From Haliotis rubra (lineage: Eukaryota), in contig NW_025765789.1 in the NCBI RefSeq assembly GCF_003918875.1, positions 1 through 64,000 of the forward strand: 64,000 nt of DNA, read 5' to 3'. The position numbers and the translations under genes were made by a program. A model generated the notes under the pieces. The model searched no databases. It was given only the letters and a program-made list of their open reading frames with translations, and was not told where the DNA came from. Positions 10,831-64,000 of this stretch are shown here, piece after piece. Numbering within the stretch: position 1 is the first letter of the stretch; every line of letters starts with the position of its first letter.

Positions 10831-23789
<12,959 letters not shown>

Positions 23790-38129: not shown

Positions 38130-47916
<9,787 letters not shown>

Positions 47917-49899: not shown

Positions 49900-51418
49900 C
49901 ACCCAAGGCCAAAAGAAAGCTGCCTGTGCTAAAAATCTTAATAAAAATCAACACAGACAAAAATTTCAAAAGATTTCATATCTATTTATGTTGATAGTAA
50001 GGCCACTTGCTAAATATCCGGAGGTTATTACAACATCAAACATGAAGTAATGGTCAAGCAACATTTAATTAAATGACACTGGTATCAAAAAGCAAAGTTA
50101 CATGTTTTCAGTTGTGTTGAACACTATCTGTGAACTCCAGATTTGTCAACGTTTAGGTGTGCATTACTTAGTATCTTGTGTGTCCTCCTTCTGCATTGAT
50201 ACAGCAAGTACTCGACGTCTCATTGACGTTGTGAGACGTCTGATGAAGGCATTTGGGATATTCCTCCATTCATGATGAATGGCCTGTTCCAGTTGTCTCA
50301 GGTTTGCTGGAGGGTTTAGTCTCATTATGATTTTTCTGCCCAGAAAGTCCCAGAGATGCTCTTTTGGTGAGAGGTCAGGGGGAAAGAGACGGCCAAGGCA
50401 AAACGTTGATGTTATTGGTTCCCATGAAGTATGTCACAATCCTAGCTGTGTGTGCAGGAGCATTGTCTTGTTGAAATAATGTCCTTTGGTGTTGATTAAC
50501 GAAAGGAAACACAACTGGACGAATAACCTGGTCAATGTATTGTTGTGCTGTCAGGTTGCCTTGAACTGTGACCAATTGTGTCTTCATTTCGCCACAGATA
50601 CCTCCCCAAACCATAACACTCCCGCCACTATGAGCCTGAACCTCCATAACGCATGGCGGGGCATGACGTTCACCACGACGGCGATATACACGTGCTCTAC
50701 CGTCTCTGTGGTATAAAGAAAACCTACTCTAATCGCTGAATAGAACCCTACGCCAATCACGAAGCTGCCATCGTCGAACACGACGTGCCCAGATCAGCCT
50801 ATTCAGGCGATGTTGACGTGTCAGCATTGTTCCACGGAATTGTCGTCTAACTGGGTGTCTGCTGACAACTCGACCGAGTGCCGTTGATGCCGATTCCGAA
50901 ACTGTCAGGAACCGATTCCTCAGATGTAGAATTCGTAGATATTGGTCTTCCTGAGGGGTAGTGACCTTTGGTCTACCTGACCTTGGTCGATCCACAGTGC
51001 TGCCAGTCTCATTGAAACGTTTAATAAGTCTATTGATAGTATGTCTGTGACAACCAAACGTTCTTGCGACATGGGCATGAGAAGCTCCCATGTTTATTAT
51101 TCCTATAACTCTTTCACGCTGTTCTGAAGTAAGTCTAGGCATATCTAAAGTGTTTTCCTGTTTCACAACGTCTGTGTTATACCAACGGTCGTTAAATGCC
51201 TCATTTGGCTGACGTAGTGTCGCTTCTATCCTTCAAAAACGTGTATTTCACCATTTGCACAAATTTCACGATTTTTTAGCTCGAAGTCAACTTTTCCTAA
51301 TGACAACATTATTGGTGTGTTTTGGCGATTGTTAAATAAAAGAAAATAATTTTCAACAATTTTGAATAAATTTCATATATCAAAATTAAAATGAGCCACT
51401 TTCGTTTGGCCTTGAGTG
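49900..51418 (-). mobile_element. Degenerate Tc1-family transposon
   Basis: TIRs CACCCAAGGCCAAAAGAAAG / CTTTCGTTTGGCCTTGAGTG flanked by TA. Transposase fragments MPRLTSEQRER...DRPRSGRPK...VLFSD and GGSVMVWGGI...FQQDNAPAH...WPSLSP, with stops and frameshifts. Confidence 0.92.
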
Positions 51419-52929: not shown

Positions 52930-55657
52930 ATGTTGTGGATCAGTCTCTTCCTCCTCCCCATGTTCACCTCCCCCTGGGTGTCAGGAATGATGGACCTTAC
53001 CATCACCAAGACCTGGGGGAACACCATCAAGTCGGAATTCTGCTTGTCCGTCACGCATGACGTCATCAACTGGCGGGGACATCTATTCTTTGACCAACCA
53101 ACCAACAACATGCAGGTACAGTAGTTTCCCACTTTTAATCTATTTTCTACTTTCCGTGATTCTCTTCCACGCTGAAAATCTAATTGTGACAGTTCTGCTA
53201 CCATTCTTGGTGACGTTATCATCATAGCTCTGCTACCATTCTTGGTGACATTATAATGACAGCTCTGCGAATGCGCAGCACCTGATTATATATATAAACG
53301 AAAACGAGAACAATAGATATATGTAGTCTCAAACGAACATGTATATTCAACTGATCAGCACAAGGTTTGTGATGCCAGCAATGATGTCATGACGTCATTA
53401 CTCACGAAATGAACAATGATGTGATGACGTCATTACTCATGAAGTCAACAATGGTGAAGTAACGCCATTACTCATGAAGTCAACAATTGTATGATGACGT
53501 CATTACGCATGAAGTCAACAATTGTATGATGACGTCCTTACGCATGAAGTCAACAATGGTGAAGTAACGCCATTACTCATGAAGTCAACAATTGTATGAT
53601 GACGTCATTGCGCATGAAGTCAACAATTGTATGATGACGTCATTACGCATGAAATCAACAATGGTGAAGTAGCGCCATTACTCATGAAGTCAACAATTGT
53701 ATGATGACGTCATTGCGCATGAAGTCAACAATTGTATGATGACGTCATTACCCATGAAGTCAACAATTGTATGATGACGTCCTTACGCATGAAGTCAACA
53801 ATGGTGAAGTAACGCCATTACTCATGAAGTCAACAATTGTATGATGACGTCATTGCGCATGAAGTCAACAATTGTATGATGACGTCATCACGCATGAAAT
53901 CAACAATGGTGAATGAACGCCATTACTCATGAAGTCAACAATTGTATGATGACGTCATTACGCATGAAGTCAACAATTGTTCCTGTTTCATGTTGTCTAG
54001 ATATGGTGAGAGCTGTTGTACCAACATGAACCAATTGAGTTAATACGTACATTAACTGTATCCACAGTTTTACTCTGGAGTTGTGATAGAGTCCATGGAC
54101 AACGGGAAGGAGTATGTGATAGAGCACACTCCCCGCCATGGCGAACTGACCACGGGTAGCAAGTACTGTGGTCACTTCATGGTGGACTACACTGGCCAGA
54201 AACCCTCAAGCATACAGTTCTACATTGAAGGGGTGAACGGACCTACTCCCACACCAGATTACCATAGGGTCAGTGCTCGGCTTGCTGCAAACTATGTAGA
54301 CAATACCTGTGAAGTTGTTTTACACCCCGCAATGGTCAGTGAAGAAACCTTTGTGACCATCCAGTTTTATTTGTAGATTTTAAGCAAACAACTTGGTCGA
54401 GTTTGGTTAAGAATTACCCAACTGACGGGACAGCAGAAGAACGTAGTTGTAACACCATCGCAGTCCTTAACCAAATAGAAACAGCAGATAAACGTAGGAG
54501 AATAGTCTTATTGTTATGCCAAGTACAATTCCGAAAATGAAAATTCTGGAACAAATGTAAAAGTGACCCAATTATCCAAAGAAGTAGTACTGTTGCCCTG
54601 ATGGAAAGAAAACGGTTTATATCAGAGGACATCAATAAATGTACGTGTACAGAAAGACGAACATCAGGATACTGTGAAATGATGAGGACATGTTGTTAGA
54701 TCCGTGAAGATCCGGGTTAGAATCGATCTTCAGTAACACATGCTTGTCGTTAGAGGCGACTGGATTGATCACCGGATTGTCTGGTCGAAACTCGATTATT
54801 TACAGACCCGCCGCCATATAGCTGGAATATTGCTGAGTGCGGCGTAAACTAAATTCACTCACTCACTCACTCCCTGATGTTATATAGGTCACGTCCTCTG
54901 GGAACTGAAGTCTTTCGACCCCAACAACTACCTGAACAACTGGAAAGCCCTGGCCGACGGTCAGTGGGACGAAGGCTCTGGGTCAGTTGTGGATGACCCT
55001 GCTGGAGGGGGCGATAAGGTTCTTCGGGTGTTCTACGAAAAAGGCCAATACGTCGGACTCCATAATCACCGGGGTCTTGGATTCTACGCCAAACCTGCTG
55101 CTCCACAGAAGGCCTTGACCCTTAGCTATGACCTTTTCTTTGACCCTAACTTTGACTTCGTCAAAGGAGGTAAGTTGCCTGGACTGTTTGGAGGCTGGGT
55201 GAATTGTTCCGGGGGTGAGCATTCCGACACGTGCTTCACGGCCCGGCTGATGTGGAGGGTGAACGGGGATGGCGAGATATATGCCTACATTCCCTCTCAA
55301 CAGGTGTCTACTTTCTGCCATGAAGTCCAGTGCAACTTCCAGTACGGCAATTCCCTGGGGAGAGGGAGTTGGAGGTTCCAGAAAGGGAAGTGGCAGACCA
55401 TTACAGAACACATCACCCTCAACACTCCCGGGAAGACGGACGGGTTTGCCAAGATTTGGTATAATGGCTACAGTGTCTATGAAATCAACAACGTCAACTT
55501 CAGAAACAACCCCAACATACTAATTGACGGGATATTTTTCTCCACCTTCTTTGGAGGCAGTACTTCGAGCTGGGCCCCGACGAGGGACTGCTACGCCTAC
55601 TTCAAGAACTTTGTCCTATCCACTGAAAACATTGACCCTCCTCGCATTGTGGGTTAA
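52930..55657 (+). CDS. Gene E: secreted CBM2-like plus PL14 alginate-lyase-like protein
   Basis: Exon 52930-53115 encodes the signal peptide plus CBM part 1, exon 54068-54268 CBM part 2 plus a PT linker, and exon 54888-55657 the whole PL14 domain (VLRVFYEKG, LSYDLFFDPNFDFVKGGKLPGLFGG, RLMWR..GDGEIYAY, LNTPGKTDG, GIFFSTFFGG..SWAP). The domain closely resembles abalone alginate lyases as I recall them. The best exon 2/3 splice sites differ by one phase (see findings). Confidence 0.85.
53380..53979. repeat. 35-bp minisatellite (about 17 units, 105-bp higher-order period) containing TGACGTCA motifs
   Basis: Units AATTGTATGATGACGTCATTACGCATGAAGTCAAC (x2) and AATGGTGAAGTAACGCCATTACTCATGAAGTCAAC (x1) alternate. 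Confidence 0.93.
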
Positions 55658-56691
55658 GGGTATGATTCATCGCTTATATGACATATTACCGGTATTGTGC
55701 ACTATGTCATCAATACACAAATAAGTGGATTTCAGTCTTTATGTTGTGGTTTTGTGTTTGTATTTCATGTCCGTTCTTTTTGTTTTACGCAACTAGCTCG
55801 TAACTGTGTGATCGCCGCGAATAGCTGCTAATTTACTGACACGGCATTAAGAAATACTCACTCACTCACTCCACTCTGCTTGTGGTTAAACTTCGAGATC
55901 CGTGAACGAATATACAAGCGGCTTTCAGTCCCGAAGCCTTTTACAACATCCTCAATGCTACCGACTTTTGCTTTGGCTAGAAAAGTTGCAGACGTGTTCA
56001 TTCCTATTTCGTACTGGATGACACTGCTCCAGAGAAATAAAATAATGACGTACTTACATGGGCAAGCAAACGTACCTCTTAATCCCTGTTTGAGAGATTA
56101 ACGATAATATTTAATACCATATCAGTATTTTCAGGATATGTTTTTTTAACATCCTGTGTTTAATTTACTTGCCTTGGCGTGTGTTTGTGGATGCTACCGG
56201 CTGCAGGACGTGATACATTCATCAATCTACAAACACCCGGTGTCATCATTATGTAATAGTGATTCATGCTTAAATATTTATAGTCGTAATCGAACAATGG
56301 ACTTTACAGTTAGAATATACCCATTAATGTTATTGAAAGGGTTGAATCGCTTCAGCTACAAACGTCCTTTTCAACAAAACACGTCTAAACTTCATGTAAA
56401 GCTGAACTGTACCCGCATGAAATACCATCTGCATCACACTTTCACGAAATCAAAACAGATAAACTACAGAAAACCTAGACAATTTCAAATTGCAAAACAT
56501 TTATTAAATACCTGACGTGAAATACACGCAGTCGGGGTCAATGGACACATCCGTACACGTCAAGCAGTGAGCATGGTTCTCACACAAAGACCAAACCACA
56601 GGAATGTGTGATCAAGCGATTCTCACAGCCATTATAACAAAATGAAGAAGGATCAGCCCCATGGCTCGGCACCTAACCCGGAAATGCGGAT

Positions 56692-56822
56692 ATATATAGA
56701 ACGTCATACTAGTGACGAGAAGATGTCATGGGAGCAGAGAAACAACGAGTTGTTTCTCTGCTCTCATGACATCTTCGAGTTCAATACAAACATCAAAATA
56801 CACTAGTATGACGTTCTATATT
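56692..56822. repeat. Nested inverted repeat (hairpin, MITE-like)
   Basis: Outer arms TATAGAACGTCATACTAGTG / CACTAGTATGACGTTCTATA and inner arms GAAGATGTCATG.GAGCAGAGAAACAAC / GTTGTTTCTCTGCTC.CATGACATCTTC. Confidence 0.8.
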
Positions 56823-57263
56823 TATTATATACCCTCTTATCTTGCCTTAATCTGCTATTAAGAAAACAAAAGATAGCGGCAGGTAGGGGTTCAATGCGGA
56901 ATCTGGGGTGCAATACGGAATTTGACCACGTCATCCGTATTGCACCCCTGTATTACTATATTACGTTTACATTGGTAATACTATATAATAAGTAGGCATA
57001 CAGTTTAACATGTCAACAAAGACGCTCTTAACTAAAGTTGCTGTCAACATTGATGTTCAAATATTTTTGGATACAGAATGTAATAATAAACAAAGGGACA
57101 CTAAATCGATACATTATATACAAAATATGATGTTACCACCAAGAAAAACTATCTGCAGAACCAAAACATGATATGCCGACATAAGTCGTAACATCATCAT
57201 TTACAATGCTTACAATAGCCAAACAAATTATGGAATAAATAATCATTTACAAGGTGAATACCT

Positions 57264-58367
57264 TTACGACACGTGGGTCACGGAAAAAGATGATTTCCAT
57301 GATCCGAAAAGTGAACTTACATTTTCACGAAACTTTTTCCCGAATGCACAAAGGAAAACAAAATTAAAGACACAGTTACACACAGTGAGAGCGTTCCCGA
57401 TTCTACCAAATACTATACAAGCATGTTTACAGTTCTTGCCTTGCCAAATTGAAAGTTTGAATATGAACTGCAGCGATGTGGACGAATGGCTCACGATGGA
57501 CATCAGAGTCACAGCCAGAACAACGAGTGTGAACTTGCCGTCAGATCTTCCTCCCAGCTTACTGGTGGACTTGCCGCACGACTTAGCTACTGACTTGCGA
57601 ATGGTATGTCGGGATCGGTACAAGTGCAGGAGAATCAGAGAAGTAGTTATTATGAATATCACAAAAGGAACAATTAGTTTTACGACCATGTTGAGGTACC
57701 CCCTGTAGTACCTCAGATAGAACTTTGAAAACATAAAGTCTCTGTTTCGTGGACGAAGCCATGACCTGTTCAGATAGGGTTCCCAGTAGCTTTCAGGCGC
57801 CATGGCGATCCAGTGGGGGATGTTGAACAGGATGGAAAAGGTATAGATAGCCAGAACAACCCATCTGATAGTTTTCCGGGTCATCATAGACTTGACCTTT
57901 AAAGGTTTGGTAACCATGACGTACCTCTGAAGGGCCAAAGCGACTGTGATGTAGATGCCCGCAGTGTATGCAGTGTGGGAGATGGGCGCCAGTATGGACT
58001 GGGAGACCATGGCAATATGGTCCACGAAGTCAGTTCCAGGGTTCACCCACAGTATACCGTCCAGGACGGTCACGGCGACAAGGTAGACGTTGTCGGGGAC
58101 GGCAAGGTGGAATAGCAACGCTGTTCCAACTGAAGACATACTCTTCTGACCCAGCACCGCCATTGTGAAACAGTTGCCAAGAAACCCAAAAGACGCTATG
58201 ACCAAGATGAAAATACCGTAGATCTTCATGTACGGGTTGTACGGGATTCCGTAATACACAAACCAGTCTGGTTCTGTCTCGGTATCATTGATGACTTCAG
58301 CCAAGGGAACATCCAAACTGATCCTCGAATGATTAGCCCCATCGTAAGTGATATTTGTGTAACCCAT
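57264..58367 (-). CDS. Intronless rhodopsin-like (class A) GPCR, FMRFamide-receptor/Srw-like, 367 aa
   Basis: First ATG at 58367. N-terminus with NIT/NHS/NDT sequons. Seven hydrophobic segments with GN (TM1), LAVPD (TM2), QRY (DRY variant), FNIPHW (TM4), IVPF (TM5) and NCVFNF..C.FGKKFRE (TM7/helix 8). Confidence 0.9.
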   Translation of the reverse strand: MGYTNITYDGANHSRISLDVPLAEVINDTETEPDWFVYYGIPYNPYMKIYGIFILVIASFGFLGNCFTMAVLGQKSMSSVGTALLFHLAVPDNVYLVAVTVLDGILWVNPGTDFVDHIAMVSQSILAPISHTAYTAGIYITVALALQRYVMVTKPLKVKSMMTRKTIRWVVLAIYTFSILFNIPHWIAMAPESYWEPYLNRSWLRPRNRDFMFSKFYLRYYRGYLNMVVKLIVPFVIFIITTSLILLHLYRSRHTIRKSVAKSCGKSTSKLGGRSDGKFTLVVLAVTLMSIVSHSSTSLQFIFKLSIWQGKNCKHACIVFGRIGNALTVCNCVFNFVFLCAFGKKFRENVSSLFGSWKSSFSVTHVS

Positions 58368-58774
58368 GCTTGCTGTGCAGACTGCTCCTACTGTCCCGAC
58401 GCATATACACGCTCGGAATTCAACAAACCAGTTCAAGAGTCAATAACACCAGCAGCTTTTAGCACTATACTAGTACCCAAAATCCACAACCAAGCCTTCT
58501 GTGCAAAGCATTTTTGAAGCGCCTTTTATCCCTTGCCAACCACTTTAACACTTAGTCTATGTACCGGATGTACAAAAGTAAGGCGTGTTTATGGTCAGCT
58601 TATTACATCCTGTTCTGTCTGCCGCCAGATGGCATGACTAATTACTTCACACATAGAAGCACATTTATCAATGTACTGCCACTAAGCGTCGACCTGTCGG
58701 ATCCAGCTACCGGTTACATGCTGCCAGGAAACTACCATCTGATTATGACACAAAACGGGAAGAGTTCATTACAG

Positions 58775-59030
58775 AAATAGGGGAAGTAGTTTCGTCAAAG
58801 TCGATCCCAGCTGACCTCATAATAAACTTTGATCAAACTGGCATGAAAATCGTCCCCGTATCAAATTGGACATTAACAACTCAAGGACATTCGTTGCGAA
58901 TCGTTTCTTCAAACTTTGAAAAAGAAACATTTTGAAGTTCGCTTTGTTCCGGCTGGGTGCACTTGTGAGTTACAGCCGATGGACCTATCAGTGAACGGAG
59001 AATTGAAAGGGATAGTGAAGGAACAATTAG
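58775..59030 (+). mobile_element. pogo/Tigger-type DDE transposase remnant
   Basis: Translates to IPADLIINFDQTGMKIVP..WT and, after an internal deletion, FVPAGCTCELQPMDLSVNGELK. Both are typical DDE_1 motifs. Confidence 0.7.
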
Positions 59031-59829
59031 ATATAGCTTCAGATATAGTCGCATTTTTCGCACTTATAAGTAGCTCGCATTATTTTATCAATGTACTAGT
59101 AAAAGAATCATTGGCATGATGGAAGTGATGGCATCATTAACAATTTGACATTGGCATCTATGATAATTGTTATTGTCACTCTGCTGACATAGATACGTCA
59201 ACATTAATCCTACTACACCACAATAATCAGTTAACGGCCAGGTATATGGAGGTCAGTGGGTATGTGTATATATGATGTGTGTGACATCGTTAGCTACAAT
59301 CATTAGTCAAAACAAATCGATATGTTAGCTTTGATGTTTGTGTCATGGTTGATACAAGTAAATGGCAGCCTCGGTGTAACACATATGGTTCACGAATCAC
59401 CATCATGTGTTAAAGGGCCTTAGGGTAGGCTAATAGAAAATTCGTTCGCTTGTCTCTCTGATTACCGGTAATTTGATTCCCCAGTTCGGTACAATGTGTG
59501 CAGCCCTGTTATTGTAAAACCTAATAATTGTGTTTCTCCAGTACAACATAGAGCACTTTCGTCAAAGAAAATGGTCTGGCCCCAAACAAAGTAACATGCG
59601 CATATAACGCACACATATATACGTGTGTGTGACATATATAAAAAATGCTATATTTTCTCTCCCAACAATAAAACGCCTAGGTGTATTTTCCCGAATGTAA
59701 AGTGGGATAACACATGTAATCCTGTATCGGTAGCAACCAAATTTCACAGTATAAAGGATCAAATGTCTGTTAGCATGTATAGCTTATACATATAAGATGT
59801 GATGTGGTGAGGTGAGCTCAGGTCAAATG

Positions 59830-60145
59830 GGGAGTTTAACGTCGTACTTAAGAATATTTCGCTCATATGACGACGTGCATGGGTGTGCATGTGTGGCTGC
59901 TTGTACTAGCCCGGACTTAAGCTGGTTTTATAGTGCTAGCTCACTGAGATACCATGCCGCAGTTAAGCATGAATACCCCACTCAAGCACATTAAACTGAC
60001 TCCGAGCCCACCAGTCCTTGTTGTACCCATTAATGCCGAGCGCCAGGCAGGGACCAACAAGTACCATATTTATACGTCATTTGGTATGACGCGGCCGGGG
60101 ATCGAACCCGCGGCCTTCCGCTCTTCGCACAGACGCTCTAACCAC
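59830..60145 (-). mobile_element. Third tRNA-related SINE-like repeat
   Basis: Antisense B-box GGGATCGAACCC. Similar degraded sequence at about 20140-20285. Confidence 0.5.
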
Positions 60146-60773
60146 TACTGCAGTCTGTAAAATGTTCAACAAGAGAAGGCGTCCGTTCCCAGTTGGGCGT
60201 TGTCTTCAATATCCAACTGATGGTACTCTGGTGAACATTGAGGTGACGTACAACCCCAGCCTCCGGACGTCCAATGTTTCGATTTACAGCAGTGAGTCGA
60301 TATTCTGTGATAGGCTCACAGAACTTAACGGTATTCTTTCATTTAGCTAAAAAATGCCAATGGCCGTCTGAAAGCAAAACGCCTTGTAAGGCAATGTCTC
60401 CGCACTCGATTACTAAGAACTGCAAGTGCATACCTTTTTTGGCACTTTCGGGCGTATACGTACATTTAAGTTTCCGAAGATGTGTTTTTGCGCTGTGCAT
60501 TTGCATTATAATGACCAAATTATAAAAATCAAACACTAATTTTGAAAAATATTCGAAATTTCATATATCAATATAACATATGAGGTTTTTTTGGGGAGAC
60601 TATATAATGCGCGATCATCATATAGTTATGTAACAAAATTATATGTAACTGTAATTTTTCTACGAAGATAGGGTTAAAACATGCAGGAGTGAACGTGTGT
60701 CCTTATTTCTTTATATATAAACACATCTTGCATAACATGTACTTTATCAGTATATGTAACGTCATGTGAGGCC

Positions 60774-60844
60774 TATATAATCAGTGTCTACATATCTCGG
60801 GAAGATAGGGAAGATAGACGGACAGCACGACAGACCTGAAATAG
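60774..60844 (+). promoter_or_regulatory. Candidate TATA box and short non-coding first exon of gene F
   Basis: TATATAA at 60774-60780, a consensus donor AG|GTAAGT at 60844/60845, and an acceptor TTTTAAG at 61094 just before ATG 61099. Confidence 0.55.
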
Positions 60845-61098
60845 GTAAGTGTGCGATGTTGGGGAACATATTGAAGAATGTGAAATGGCCTGATGTTCAT
60901 ATTGCCTGTTGATCATCGGATGTACTTTTCGATGAGAACAACTGCTTTTGTGCAACAGTGATAGATTTACAATCACATATACCGTTTACCTATATTTCTC
61001 GCTCGGCATGACATCCACGTGTACTGACCAAAGAGAGAGAATAAGCGTAGGTCAAGTATTCATGTTAACATATATTTCCGTTTTTCGTTTTAAGAATC

Positions 61099-64000
61099 AT
61101 GATGTTCCTTCTCGCGGTTCTGCTTCTCATCTCATCTGTCGTTGCCATGGATATTCCCATCACCGATCACTGGGATGGTGGTTTCAAGTCTGAGTTCTGC
61201 GAGCCTATCACTAAAAACCTGCAACACTGGACAGCTCACGCCATCTTTGACCATCACATCAATCACTTGGACGTAAGTTGTATTCCGCGTGAATGATTAA
61301 CACACGAGTGACAAAATTTAGTTTTTGAAGCCATACTACTAACCAAGTACCTGAATGCAGTAAATCTCCTTAATAGAAGGAACACAAACCATAACAGTTG
61401 CCTCAGAACGCTTTCAATTATTTGTATTGACCTTCTGAAGATGACGTGTAAGAACAGCAGAATCTCCGACGAGGAGCTCTGGTTAATCTTGTCTTCCGTT
61501 TAAGTCACGGAGAGCTGTCCTGGTTGTTGAGATCCGTCTCGTGGTGTCCTTGACAACCTACTAGGTATGTAAATATGCCCCCTGCTGTCGACTACTTTTA
61601 TGTTTCTGGCACACCAGAGCTCATTGGTGGTGGACGTACTCCAGTAGTAGACCGTACTTCGTACCTTATACCGGAAGTCCTGGTAGAGACCTAATTATGC
61701 ATGTGTTCCCAAGTAACAAAAAAGGTTGACATGTAACGTATTTTCAACTATCATACTTTTAGGTGTGGGTTGCTGAAGTTCAGAAAACTCTGAATGGCGG
61801 TAAAGAGTTTGTCCTTGTCAACAAGCAATCCTATGGTGATCAGAAGGTTGGCGACAAACTGTGCGTGAAGCTAGTTGGCCGTACGGACGGTGACATTGTA
61901 CCCAAAGGCCGGTTCTACATTGAAGGCATGGATGGGCCAGTGTCGGCCCACACACCCAATATACAGACACCCAAGCCAGGGACACCTCACACCTCTAGCC
62001 ACGTCACAGGTAAACATGGAGTGAGTTGAGTTGTAGGTTCATAGGGCACTATTTCTGCCATTTGTAAGTGGTAATACCAAGAATAGAATCCCATGCTGTA
62101 AGTGGTAATACCAAGAATAGATTCCCATGTTGTAAGTGGTAATACCAAGAATAGATTCCCATGTTGTAAGTGGTAATACCAAGAATAGATTCCCATGTTG
62201 TAAGTGGTAATACCAAGAATAGATTCCCATGTTGTAAGTGGTAATACCAAGAATAGATTCCCATGCTGTAAGTGGTAATACCAAGAATAGATTCCCATGT
62301 TGTAAGTGGTAATACCAAGAATAGATTCCCATGTTGCAAGTGGTAATACTAAGAATAGATTCCCATGTTGTAAGTGGTAATACCAAGAATAGATTTCCAT
62401 GTTGTAAGTGGTAATACCAAGAATAGATTCCCATGTTGTAAGTGGTAATACCAAGAATAGATTCCCATGTTGTAAGTGGTAATACCAAGAATAGATTCCC
62501 ATGTTGTAAGTGGTAATACCAAGAATAGATTCCCATGTTGTAAGTGGTAATACCAAGAATAGATTCCCATGTTGTAAGTGGTAATACCAAGAATAGATTC
62601 CCATGTTGTAAGTGGTAATACCAAGAATAGATTCACATGTTGTATGCCTGTGGGTGCACACTAAGGAAGATTGAATATTAAAGTGAACTACCATCTGGTG
62701 ATACGCCACTGAGTGAGTGAGGCGTTCCATGAGCTATGAAAGGTAATGTGTGCTTTATAAAGTAACGATAAGAATATTTTCTCCATGAAACAAGTATTTG
62801 CATTGCCTCCACGTGCTGTACCACTGTATTTGACCTAAATTCAGCTTCCCAGTCGTCAAAGTCTCTGACAGTATTGCCTGGTATCTAATGAGTTGACGCC
62901 ATTGCCATCTCCAGTTTTCTTATAATCGCATGCGAAAACCCTTCCCTTTAATAAAGTATACTAGTCGTTCACACCATCCATCCGTATATGGGCCATGGGG
63001 TAGCCCAGTGGTTAATACGTTCACTCGTCACGCCCACGACCCGGGTTCAATTCCCAACATGGGTCCAATGTGTGAAGCCCATTTCTGGTGTCCGTCGTCG
63101 TGATATTGCTGGAATATTGCTAAAAGTGGCGTAAAACTGAACTCACTCACTCACCCATCCGTATAAAAATACTTCATTACACATTTTCCACATACCATTG
63201 TTGTTTCCGGTAGCACCTTATAAGTTTAAACAGTTTGGATAAAAGTGATGATTTACAATGAGCCATTACATATCGTATATCATACAAAATGTGTCTTCAA
63301 GCATGACTCGGTATTAAATGAATGTCATCAAGTGAAACACTGACAGTGATTGGTGTGACACAACTATGATCTTTAATTTATCGATTCCATTTTATAAACA
63401 TGTAACATCCATGACAAATGACGTCAATAATAACGCATTTTGTCAGGGAAACAAATTACTGTGTGCATTTATATGTATCACTTAATATTGACCATAATGA
63501 TGAACCTGTCGTTCTTTCAATGTGTGGCCGAGATCAATATAAGTATCATGTTTAACTATCTATTTCAGGCAAGGTTCTGTATGCACGAAATGGGTTCGAC
63601 CCGAATGACTACAAGCATGGAATAACAGTGTTACAACACGGGAGCTTTGACGAGAACTCGGGCTCCGTTGTCCTTGACCCTACCGGTACCGGGGAACACG
63701 TCCTGAAAGTATTCTACGAGAAGGGACACTACGTCCACGTTCGGGGGCATCGAGGAATTCAATTCTACTGGACACCCATCACACCACACACGAGGCTGAC
63801 GTTGAGCTACGACATCTACTTTGACCCACATTTTGACTGGGTTAAAGGCGGCAAGCTCCCGGGTCTCTGGGGAGGCTCCCAAACCTGTTCTGGAGGACGT
63901 CACTATGAAGATTGTTTTTCGACCCGTTTCATGTGGAGGACTGGAGGAGGTGGAGAACTCTACGCCTACATCCCTACTGGACAACGTTCTGACTTTTGCA
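61099..64000 (+). CDS. Gene F: secreted CBM2-like plus PL14 alginate-lyase-like protein (3' end beyond window)
   Basis: Phase-consistent exons: 61099-61272 (signal peptide, DHWDGGF), 61763-62009 (VWVAEV..KEFVLVNK..GDKLC plus linker, ending phase 1) and 63569 to beyond 64000 (VLKVFYEKG, LSYDIYFDPHFDWVKGGKLPGLWGG, CSGGRH, CFSTRFMWR, GELYAY). The ORF track misses the last exon. Confidence 0.9.
62063..62643. repeat. 34-bp minisatellite (about 17 units) in gene F intron
   Basis: Unit TGTAAGTGGTAATACCAAGAATAGATTCCCATGT. Confidence 0.96.

Follow-up and report, generated by a model that had tools for sequence, protein, structure and literature searches.

Research on animal alginate lyases has so far dealt with small, single-domain enzymes that act on soluble alginate, and the question raised by the locus described here is whether an abalone also encodes lyases that carry a module for holding them on the insoluble algal wall. 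The locus lies in a 64,000-nucleotide stretch of Haliotis rubra DNA (contig NW_025765789.1, positions 1 to 64,000; hereafter the window), which is part of scaffold QXJH01001807.1 (109,287 bp). Two of its genes, E and F, are predicted with a probability of roughly 0.6 to encode secreted two-module digestive enzymes, in which shuffling of a cellulase cassette placed a family 2 carbohydrate-binding module (CBM2) on a lyase of polysaccharide lyase family 14 (PL14), and which would act as wall-targeted lyases.

In the proposed mechanism, an N-terminal and divergent CBM2-family beta-sandwich is followed by a short proline/threonine (P/T) linker and a PL14 beta-jelly-roll lyase that retains the catalytic Lys/Tyr/Tyr and the specificity loop for poly-mannuronate (polyM) of Aplysia AkAly30. 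The module would hold the lyase on the insoluble algal wall, with cellulose microfibrils as the default ligand, and this would raise the local concentration of lyase on embedded alginate, beside the co-clustered cellulases. Architecture, homology and selection are established in the sections below, while for ligand, substrate and synergy I infer what would fit them best.

Structure of genes E and F

The genes of the region are spliced and eukaryotic, and none of them is of prokaryotic style. The exons of E and F are arranged as follows:

52930-55657, + strand: gene E, exons 52930-53115, 54068-54268 and 54887/8-55657
52930..53115, + strand: gene E exon 1, signal peptide (~19 aa) and first half of the CBM2, phase 0 end, GT donor; equals residues 1-62 of protein P0123
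54068..54268, + strand: gene E exon 2, second half of the CBM2 and the short linker PTPTPDYHR; 201 nt up to a strong donor AGG/GTCAGT (the slash marks the exon boundary)
54887..55657, + strand: gene E exon 3, the entire PL14 catalytic domain through the stop codon; by its AG acceptor the exon begins at 54888
61099 to the window end (64000), + strand: gene F, three exons
61099..61272, + strand: gene F exon 1, signal peptide (16 aa) and first half of the CBM2, phase 0 donor GTAAGT; identical to protein P0004
61763..62009, + strand: gene F exon 2, second half of the CBM2 and a linker of ~22 aa rich in Pro, Thr and Ser (P/T/S), phase 1 end
63569..64000, + strand: gene F exon 3, PL14 domain up to residue 284 of 395, where the window ends

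The exons of E yield the 385-aa RefSeq protein XP_046564702.1 (P0123), and the spliced exons of F are an exact match to P0004, a database protein of 395 aa, over residues 1-284; both proteins are labelled "uncharacterized protein" in RefSeq. Their domain order is a signal peptide, a module of ~100 residues, a P/T/S-rich linker and the PL14 domain, with a very short linker of ~9 residues in E and one of ~22 in F, and with signal peptides that were judged by eye as hydrophobic leaders of 16-19 residues. The original prediction, made from the letters of the window, had read both genes as a signal peptide, CBM-like module, P/T linker and PL14 domain, and the exact matches to P0123 and P0004 confirmed this. 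It had also stated that F splices in frame at canonical sites, which held equally: all sites in F are GT-AG, the intron phases are 0 and 1, and residues 1-284 of P0004 are reproduced.

A tandem array of ~17 copies of a 35-bp unit lies in intron 1 of E (53389-53980), and the unit matches 17/20 bases of the exon-1 segment ACGCATGACGTCATCAACTG. Intron 2 of F holds an array of ~17 copies of a 34-bp unit (62058-62644) without a clear exon match, and this array also creates long spurious minus-strand open reading frames (ORFs) at 61987-62730.

Identity of the N-terminal module

The module of F had been proposed to be homologous to the first binding module (CBM1) of the neighbouring gene D, a cellulase of glycoside hydrolase family 9 (GH9). 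A tblastn comparison substantiated this, with E 1.7e-11 and 49% identity over 47 aa for the second exon and E 7e-7 for the first exon, and the F module additionally matched cellulase C on the minus strand. Ten PL14-linked modules were combined into a profile (A1), which in a search of 1.84 billion representatives returned 188 matches at E <=1e-3, 48 of which were at E <=1e-10, and gastropod GH9, mannanase and MAM proteins were matched at E 3e-50 to 4e-15. The best matches were endoglucanases of Plakobranchus, Aplysia and Elysia, a mannanase-like protein of Biomphalaria, a MAM-domain protein of Batillaria, and short stand-alone proteins of H. rubra and Pomacea. The matched stretches themselves pass the Pfam CBM_2 profile with up to 119 bits (for example P0151, residues 24-118, 31.9 bits; P0152, 14-101, 33.1 bits; and P0190, 21-111, 33 bits), and the CBM1 fragment of gene D (P0145) scored 23.2 bits against the same profile.

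The fold predicted by AlphaFold had a pLDDT (predicted local distance difference test) of 92.8 for the F module and 93.7 for the E module. When these were compared with the PDB using Foldseek, the first 10 matches were all CBM2 structures or CBM2 domains of chitinases (template modelling scores of 0.53-0.67), the top ones being Cex (6QFS/1EXG), EngD (3NDY_E), ChiA74 (6BT9), Chi18aC (2RTT) and an archaeal chitinase (5XSV). From the profile homology and the modelled fold I conclude that the module is, by descent, a divergent member of the gastropod CBM2 branch. The earlier label of a CBM2-like module was consequently borne out by homology through an intermediate profile and by the predicted fold, though the direct Pfam match fails.

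In the set of proteins P0151, P0152, P0133 and P0142, the gastropod CBM2 module was also found N-terminally on the Biomphalaria mannanase-like and Batillaria MAM-domain proteins, and as short stand-alone secreted proteins of H. rubra (159 aa) and Pomacea (166 aa). It behaves as a mobile N-terminal cassette in the digestive genes of snails.

Catalytic domain and predicted substrate

The assignment of the second module to PL14 was clear. The Pfam profile PF21294 (Polysacc_lyase_14) matched F with 248.9 bits and the E orthologue P0001 with 252.9 bits, against a cut-off of 27 and at E-values of 1e-74 to 1e-75, and it matched exon 3 of gene E at E 3e-75. The domain also matched the Aplysia alginate lyase AkAly30 (PDB 5GMT) at E 4.5e-62 and chlorovirus vAL-1 (3A0N) at E 2.7e-14. 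In an alignment of E, F and the Aplysia, HdAly-like, Littorina and scallop proteins, the AkAly30 residues Lys99, Cys115, Cys124, Tyr140 and Tyr142 were invariant, and the residue numbering agreed with the 5GMT chain at an offset of 12. K99, Y140 and Y142 are the catalytic residues of AkAly30. The equivalent of Gly118 was retained in E and F, and is His in the scallop cellouronate lyase and in an ark-clam relative. Gly118 and the Cys115-Cys124 disulfide have been tied to polyM specificity (review, PMC8618178). Judged by these residues, alginate, with a preference for polyM, would be the likeliest substrate of E and F.

Binding face and selection

The binding face of Cex CBM2a was used as a reference, the exposed tryptophans of which are W17, W54 and W72, and the corresponding columns were read from an alignment that included a bacterial CBM2. 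The residues at the W17/W54/W72 positions were:

GH9-, mannanase- and MAM-linked gastropod modules: all aromatic (almost all modules)
Gene D CBM1: W, W, F
Haliotis F module: W, W, S
Haliotis E module: W, Y, R
Caenogastropod PL14-linked modules: F or M, Y or S, Y

The PL14-linked modules do not carry the three-aromatic face of a type-A module. The Tyr that adjoins the Ser in F is not conserved, being Thr in H. asinina, and the GGF motif is lost from the E module. Both modules of the enzymes are under purifying selection, with an omega between H. rubra and H. cracherodii of 0.145 for the CBM and 0.081 for PL14 (dS ~0.65). For the CBM, this means that the module has some function, which is not necessarily tight binding to crystalline cellulose. 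The original prediction had the module anchor on algal cellulose, and this claim is weakened, as F (W-W-S) and E (W-Y-R) lack the full triad kept by GH9-linked CBM2s. Cellulose anchoring by the E and F modules is plausible, the proposed synergy with the GH9 cellulases is hypothetical, and with a degenerate binding face the anchoring is less secure than had been assumed.

Orthologues, putative transcripts and tree

Two-module proteins of 385-400 aa are annotated in H. cracherodii, H. rufescens, H. asinina, H. rubra, Batillaria attramentaria and Littorina saxatilis, and the CBM2-PL14 genes of H. rufescens are consecutive loci (LOC124148192/3). In addition, four contigs 1.3-1.6 kb long, which derive from three sequencing runs and a Joint Genome Institute (JGI) sample, contained unbroken CBM-PL14 ORFs of 395 or 400 aa together with flanking untranslated sequence, and grouped with Littorina and Batillaria in the tree. 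As the genomic genes have introns where the ORFs of the contigs run unbroken, the four contigs look like transcripts joining the CBM and PL14 modules. The one Haliotis Logan contig (L006, from DRR299178) was considered as an abalone transcript and rejected, since its sequence is genomic and has an intron ahead of the PL14 exon.

In a tree of the PL14 domain, E and F were sisters (88/84), and the CBM-bearing proteins of caenogastropods formed a 100/99 clade that also included CBM-less models of Nucella and Babylonia, the latter being an "isoform X2". Forcing all CBM-PL14 genes together cost 0.03 log-likelihood units (p-AU 0.49, approximately unbiased test), so that a single origin of the CBM-PL14 genes is allowed, and is neither demonstrated nor rejected.

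Alternative explanations

Several results weigh against reading E and F as wall-targeted CBM2-PL14 enzymes. Pfam CBM_2 (PF00553) gave no match on the Haliotis proteins or on the isolated modules even at E 10, and the caenogastropod orthologues matched it near full-length at a sub-threshold 13.4-18.7 bits (cut-off 24). The sole sequence-profile matches in the PDB were to Cex CBM2a, end to end and non-significant (E 0.21 and 0.99), a lead that was later backed by the fold searches. The third aromatic of the Cex face is replaced by Ser in F and by Arg in E, and the first position is Phe or Met in the caenogastropod PL14-linked modules. The PL14 tree does not settle how the Haliotis clade relates to the caenogastropod CBM-PL14 clade, and the canonical GT(54269)...AG(54887) pair in gene E leads to a frameshift and a stop after 6 codons.

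Of four alternative readings, two concern what the enzymes bind and cleave. The module may be a CBM2 by descent that has been retargeted or weakened, and may bind another ligand (amorphous or hydrated glucan, gut chitin or alginate) or serve mainly as a stabilising or secretion domain instead of a crystalline-cellulose anchor. I regard this as a possible but rather doubtful account. In its favour, the aromatic triad is incomplete in all PL14-linked modules and complete in nearly all GH9- and mannanase-linked ones, the E module has no GGF motif, the Foldseek matches include chitin-binding CBM2s (6BT9, 2RTT, 5XSV and 2CWR), and the persisting purifying selection implies that the module does something. 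Nevertheless, F and most caenogastropod copies retain two of the three aromatic positions, cellulase CBMs are the nearest kin of the module, and nothing positively favours a different ligand. With the binding face altered, what the module binds is a question that lends itself to direct testing. That the PL14 domain is not an alginate lyase at all, and cleaves another beta-1,4-polyuronate (glucuronan or cellouronate) like scallop MyAly and chlorovirus vAL-1, is distinctly unlikely. Both activities do occur within PL14 (PMC12423752; table in PMC8618178), and E shares 42% identity with the scallop cellouronate lyase P0041, but the tree places E and F among gastropod lyases including LbAly and HdAly-like, away from the bivalve clade, the G118 of the AkAly30 polyM loop is His in the two bivalve proteins and kept in E and F, and the diet of abalone is brown algae.

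The other two alternatives concern the gene models. It is barely credible that the fusion is a modelling artefact, in which the CBM exons are left over from a cellulase gene and the PL14 exon has a signal-peptide exon of its own. Single-domain PL14 genes with a one-exon signal peptide are indeed present in the same genome, and the CBM-less Babylonia isoform X2 falls inside the CBM-PL14 clade; however, the unbroken ORFs of the contigs join both modules in caenogastropods, a simple scan of the E and F introns returned no candidate signal-peptide exon, purifying selection acts on the CBM exons, and the same two-module gene model is found in four Haliotis annotations. More can be said for gene E on this scaffold being a broken or misassembled copy, which with canonical splicing would give only a secreted CBM2 protein of ~135 aa, though this too appears unlikely. 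Its donor AGG/GTCAGT (intron from 54269) and its acceptor TATATAG/ (exon from 54888) are out of phase, which underlies the early stop noted above, and the RefSeq protein (...DYHR-G-HVLW...) requires a non-canonical intron (GT..TA, TC..AG or GG..AT). The H. cracherodii orthologue reads AGAG/GTCAGT at the same place, with an exon 2 of 202 nt and a normal phase-1 GT-AG intron, and the 201 nt of H. rubra (AGGGT vs AGAGGT) therefore indicate that a base is missing from the end of exon 2 in this assembly. Against a broken gene stand its intact remainder under strong purifying selection (omega 0.11), the full-length RefSeq model, a weaker donor 4 nt downstream (54272/54273) that restores the frame to ...HRVSHVLW..., and the fact that one-base indels are a common assembly error. 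The missing base may reflect an assembly error, a real allele, or a gene rescued by the weaker donor.

A near-identical second copy of gene F on another H. rubra scaffold (L012, QXJH01000402.1:34593-64740) was fetched to check the exon-2 donor of E, and no E was found within 10 kb. This copy of F is without exon 1 and carries a degenerate and frameshifted duplicate of exon 2 (12863-13113), and its gene model (P0125, 358 aa) begins with an unrelated exon. Either the copy is a decaying paralogue, or it is an artefact of duplication or a haplotig.

Exon design and origin

The reading of E and F as CBM2-PL14 fusions leads to the question of how the two modules were joined. The comparison involves the cellulase gene D and a gene for a rhodopsin-type G protein-coupled receptor (GPCR) that lies between E and F:

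38130..38781, + strand: signal-peptide/CBM2/linker cassette of gene D (GH9 cellulase), exon 1 38130-38306 (phase 0), exon 2 38517-38781 (phase 1 end)
57264..58436, - strand: rhodopsin-type GPCR gene, ORF; 7tm_1 domain in loci L001, L007 and L009

The cassettes of the three enzyme genes compare as follows:

Gene D (GH9 cellulase): exon 1 177 nt, phase 0; exon 2 265 nt, phase 1
Gene E: exon 1 186 nt, phase 0; exon 2 201 nt here and 202 nt in H. cracherodii, phase 1
Gene F: exon 1 174 nt, phase 0; exon 2 247 nt, phase 1

In D, E and F alike, exon 1 encodes the signal peptide and the first half of the CBM and exon 2 the second half and the linker, with identical intron positions and phases. The intron positions (positions only, not phases) also agree in Littorina, in Batillaria and in the GH9 neighbour of Batillaria. 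In the HdAly-like PL14 gene of H. rubra, which is single-domain, one exon encodes the signal peptide and ends in phase 1 before the same PL14 exon start, so that exchanging this signal-peptide exon for the cellulase cassette is phase-compatible. A GH9 gene adjoins the CBM-PL14 gene in H. cracherodii and Batillaria, and the GPCR gene lies downstream on the opposite strand in Haliotis (H. cracherodii too) and in Littorina. Taken together, the shared exon design, the compatible phases and the GH9/GPCR neighbourhood favour exon shuffling from a neighbouring cellulase gene.

Most likely, a two-exon cassette of the neighbouring GH9 gene, consisting of a signal peptide and CBM half, a phase 0 junction, and a CBM half and linker ending in phase 1, replaced the one-exon signal peptide of a PL14 gene, the PL14 exon of which starts in phase 1. 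This probably happened once and early, and probably predates the split of the abalone and caenogastropod lineages. A wider scenario is offered tentatively: in a conserved GH9/PL14/GPCR cluster, an old shuffling event before the abalone/periwinkle split may have been followed by a change of the binding face, and animals, independently of bacteria, may thereby have evolved a wall-targeted alginate lyase with a ligand preference unlike that of cellulase CBM2. If true, this would give animals their own equivalent of the multimodular enzymes with which bacteria attack cellulose and alginate at once. The locus would also provide a clean, phase-compatible case in which exons were shuffled between adjacent animal genes for digestive enzymes.

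In the CBM-PL14 gene of Littorina saxatilis (L008:17922-19009), seven tandem copies of an exon end that encodes ...VYGSSLGRGSWRFKVG were observed in the intron following this exon.

Comparison with known enzymes

The characterised gastropod PL14 lyases had been described as single-domain proteins, and the HdAly-like, LbAly and Aplysia proteins, at 271-302 aa with a signal peptide only, agree with this. E and F resemble these lyases (AkAly30, HdAly-like and LbAly) in family, in the K/Y/Y residues, in the Cys-Gly-Cys loop and in the phase-1 intron before the catalytic domain, but add a CBM2 module of ~100 aa and a linker. With the gastropod GH9 cellulases that bear an N-terminal CBM2 (genes C and D, the HdEG66 type and Aplysia endoglucanase 4) they share a homologous signal-peptide/CBM2/linker cassette, and with gene D also the gene cluster and the exon design; in contrast to these cellulases, the catalytic domain is a lyase, not a hydrolase, and the binding face is one aromatic short. 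The best structural match of the module, CBM2a of Cellulomonas fimi Cex (1EXG, 6QFS), shares with it the structural Trp and, of the three aromatic positions on the surface, two, while identity is 17-18% and the W72 position is Ser or Arg in F and E, respectively. The conserved Cys pair of the module is placed differently from the Cex terminal disulfide.

Bacterial enzymes with PL14 and CBM2 combine the same two families by the same proposed logic, that is, cellulose binding plus an alginate lyase for brown-algal walls. In a metagenomic bacterial protein (P0108), PL14 is followed by a C-terminal CBM_2, whereas the CBM2 of E and F is N-terminal, and the CBM2 of P0108 is only 13% identical to the F module. 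Enzymes of PL14 and GH9 with one or two CBM2 domains were reported in 2026 in ISME J, including the actinomycete 'Enzyme A', and the strains with enzyme types other than GH5+PL31 were mainly actinomycetes (PMC13235733). One PL14 + GH9 + CBM2 representative was active on alginate and glucans, and the paper places it within a convergent strategy for attacking the walls of brown algae (PMC13235733). The animal CBM2-PL14 is best seen as an independent, N-terminal version of the bacterial combination. The conserved and selected CBM2-bearing form suggests that sea snails, like marine bacteria, also target lyases to the insoluble algal wall, and E and F are candidate enzymes for seaweed saccharification.

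A survey of molluscan carbohydrate-active enzymes describes an expansion of gastropod PL14 and CBMs on GH families, with no mention of a CBM on PL14 (PMC7560691), and full-text literature searches, in which most subscription journals were not covered, returned no description of an animal CBM2-PL14. The E and F proteins appear uncharacterised. The earlier claim of an uncharacterised architecture stands as far as no animal paper was found, but RefSeq models exist in four Haliotis, Littorina and Batillaria, and bacterial PL14 + CBM2 (+GH9) enzymes were assayed in 2026 (PMC13235733). With the proteins already modelled and bacterial analogues already described, the novelty is less than the original prediction implied.

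Other features of the window

Between cellulase D and gene E, the minus-strand ORFs 50729-51166 and 50375-50647 resemble a helix-turn-helix and a DDE transposase, and were read by eye as the remnant of a Tc1/mariner-type element. A run of 156 N at positions 567-722 of the window is an assembly gap or a masked stretch.

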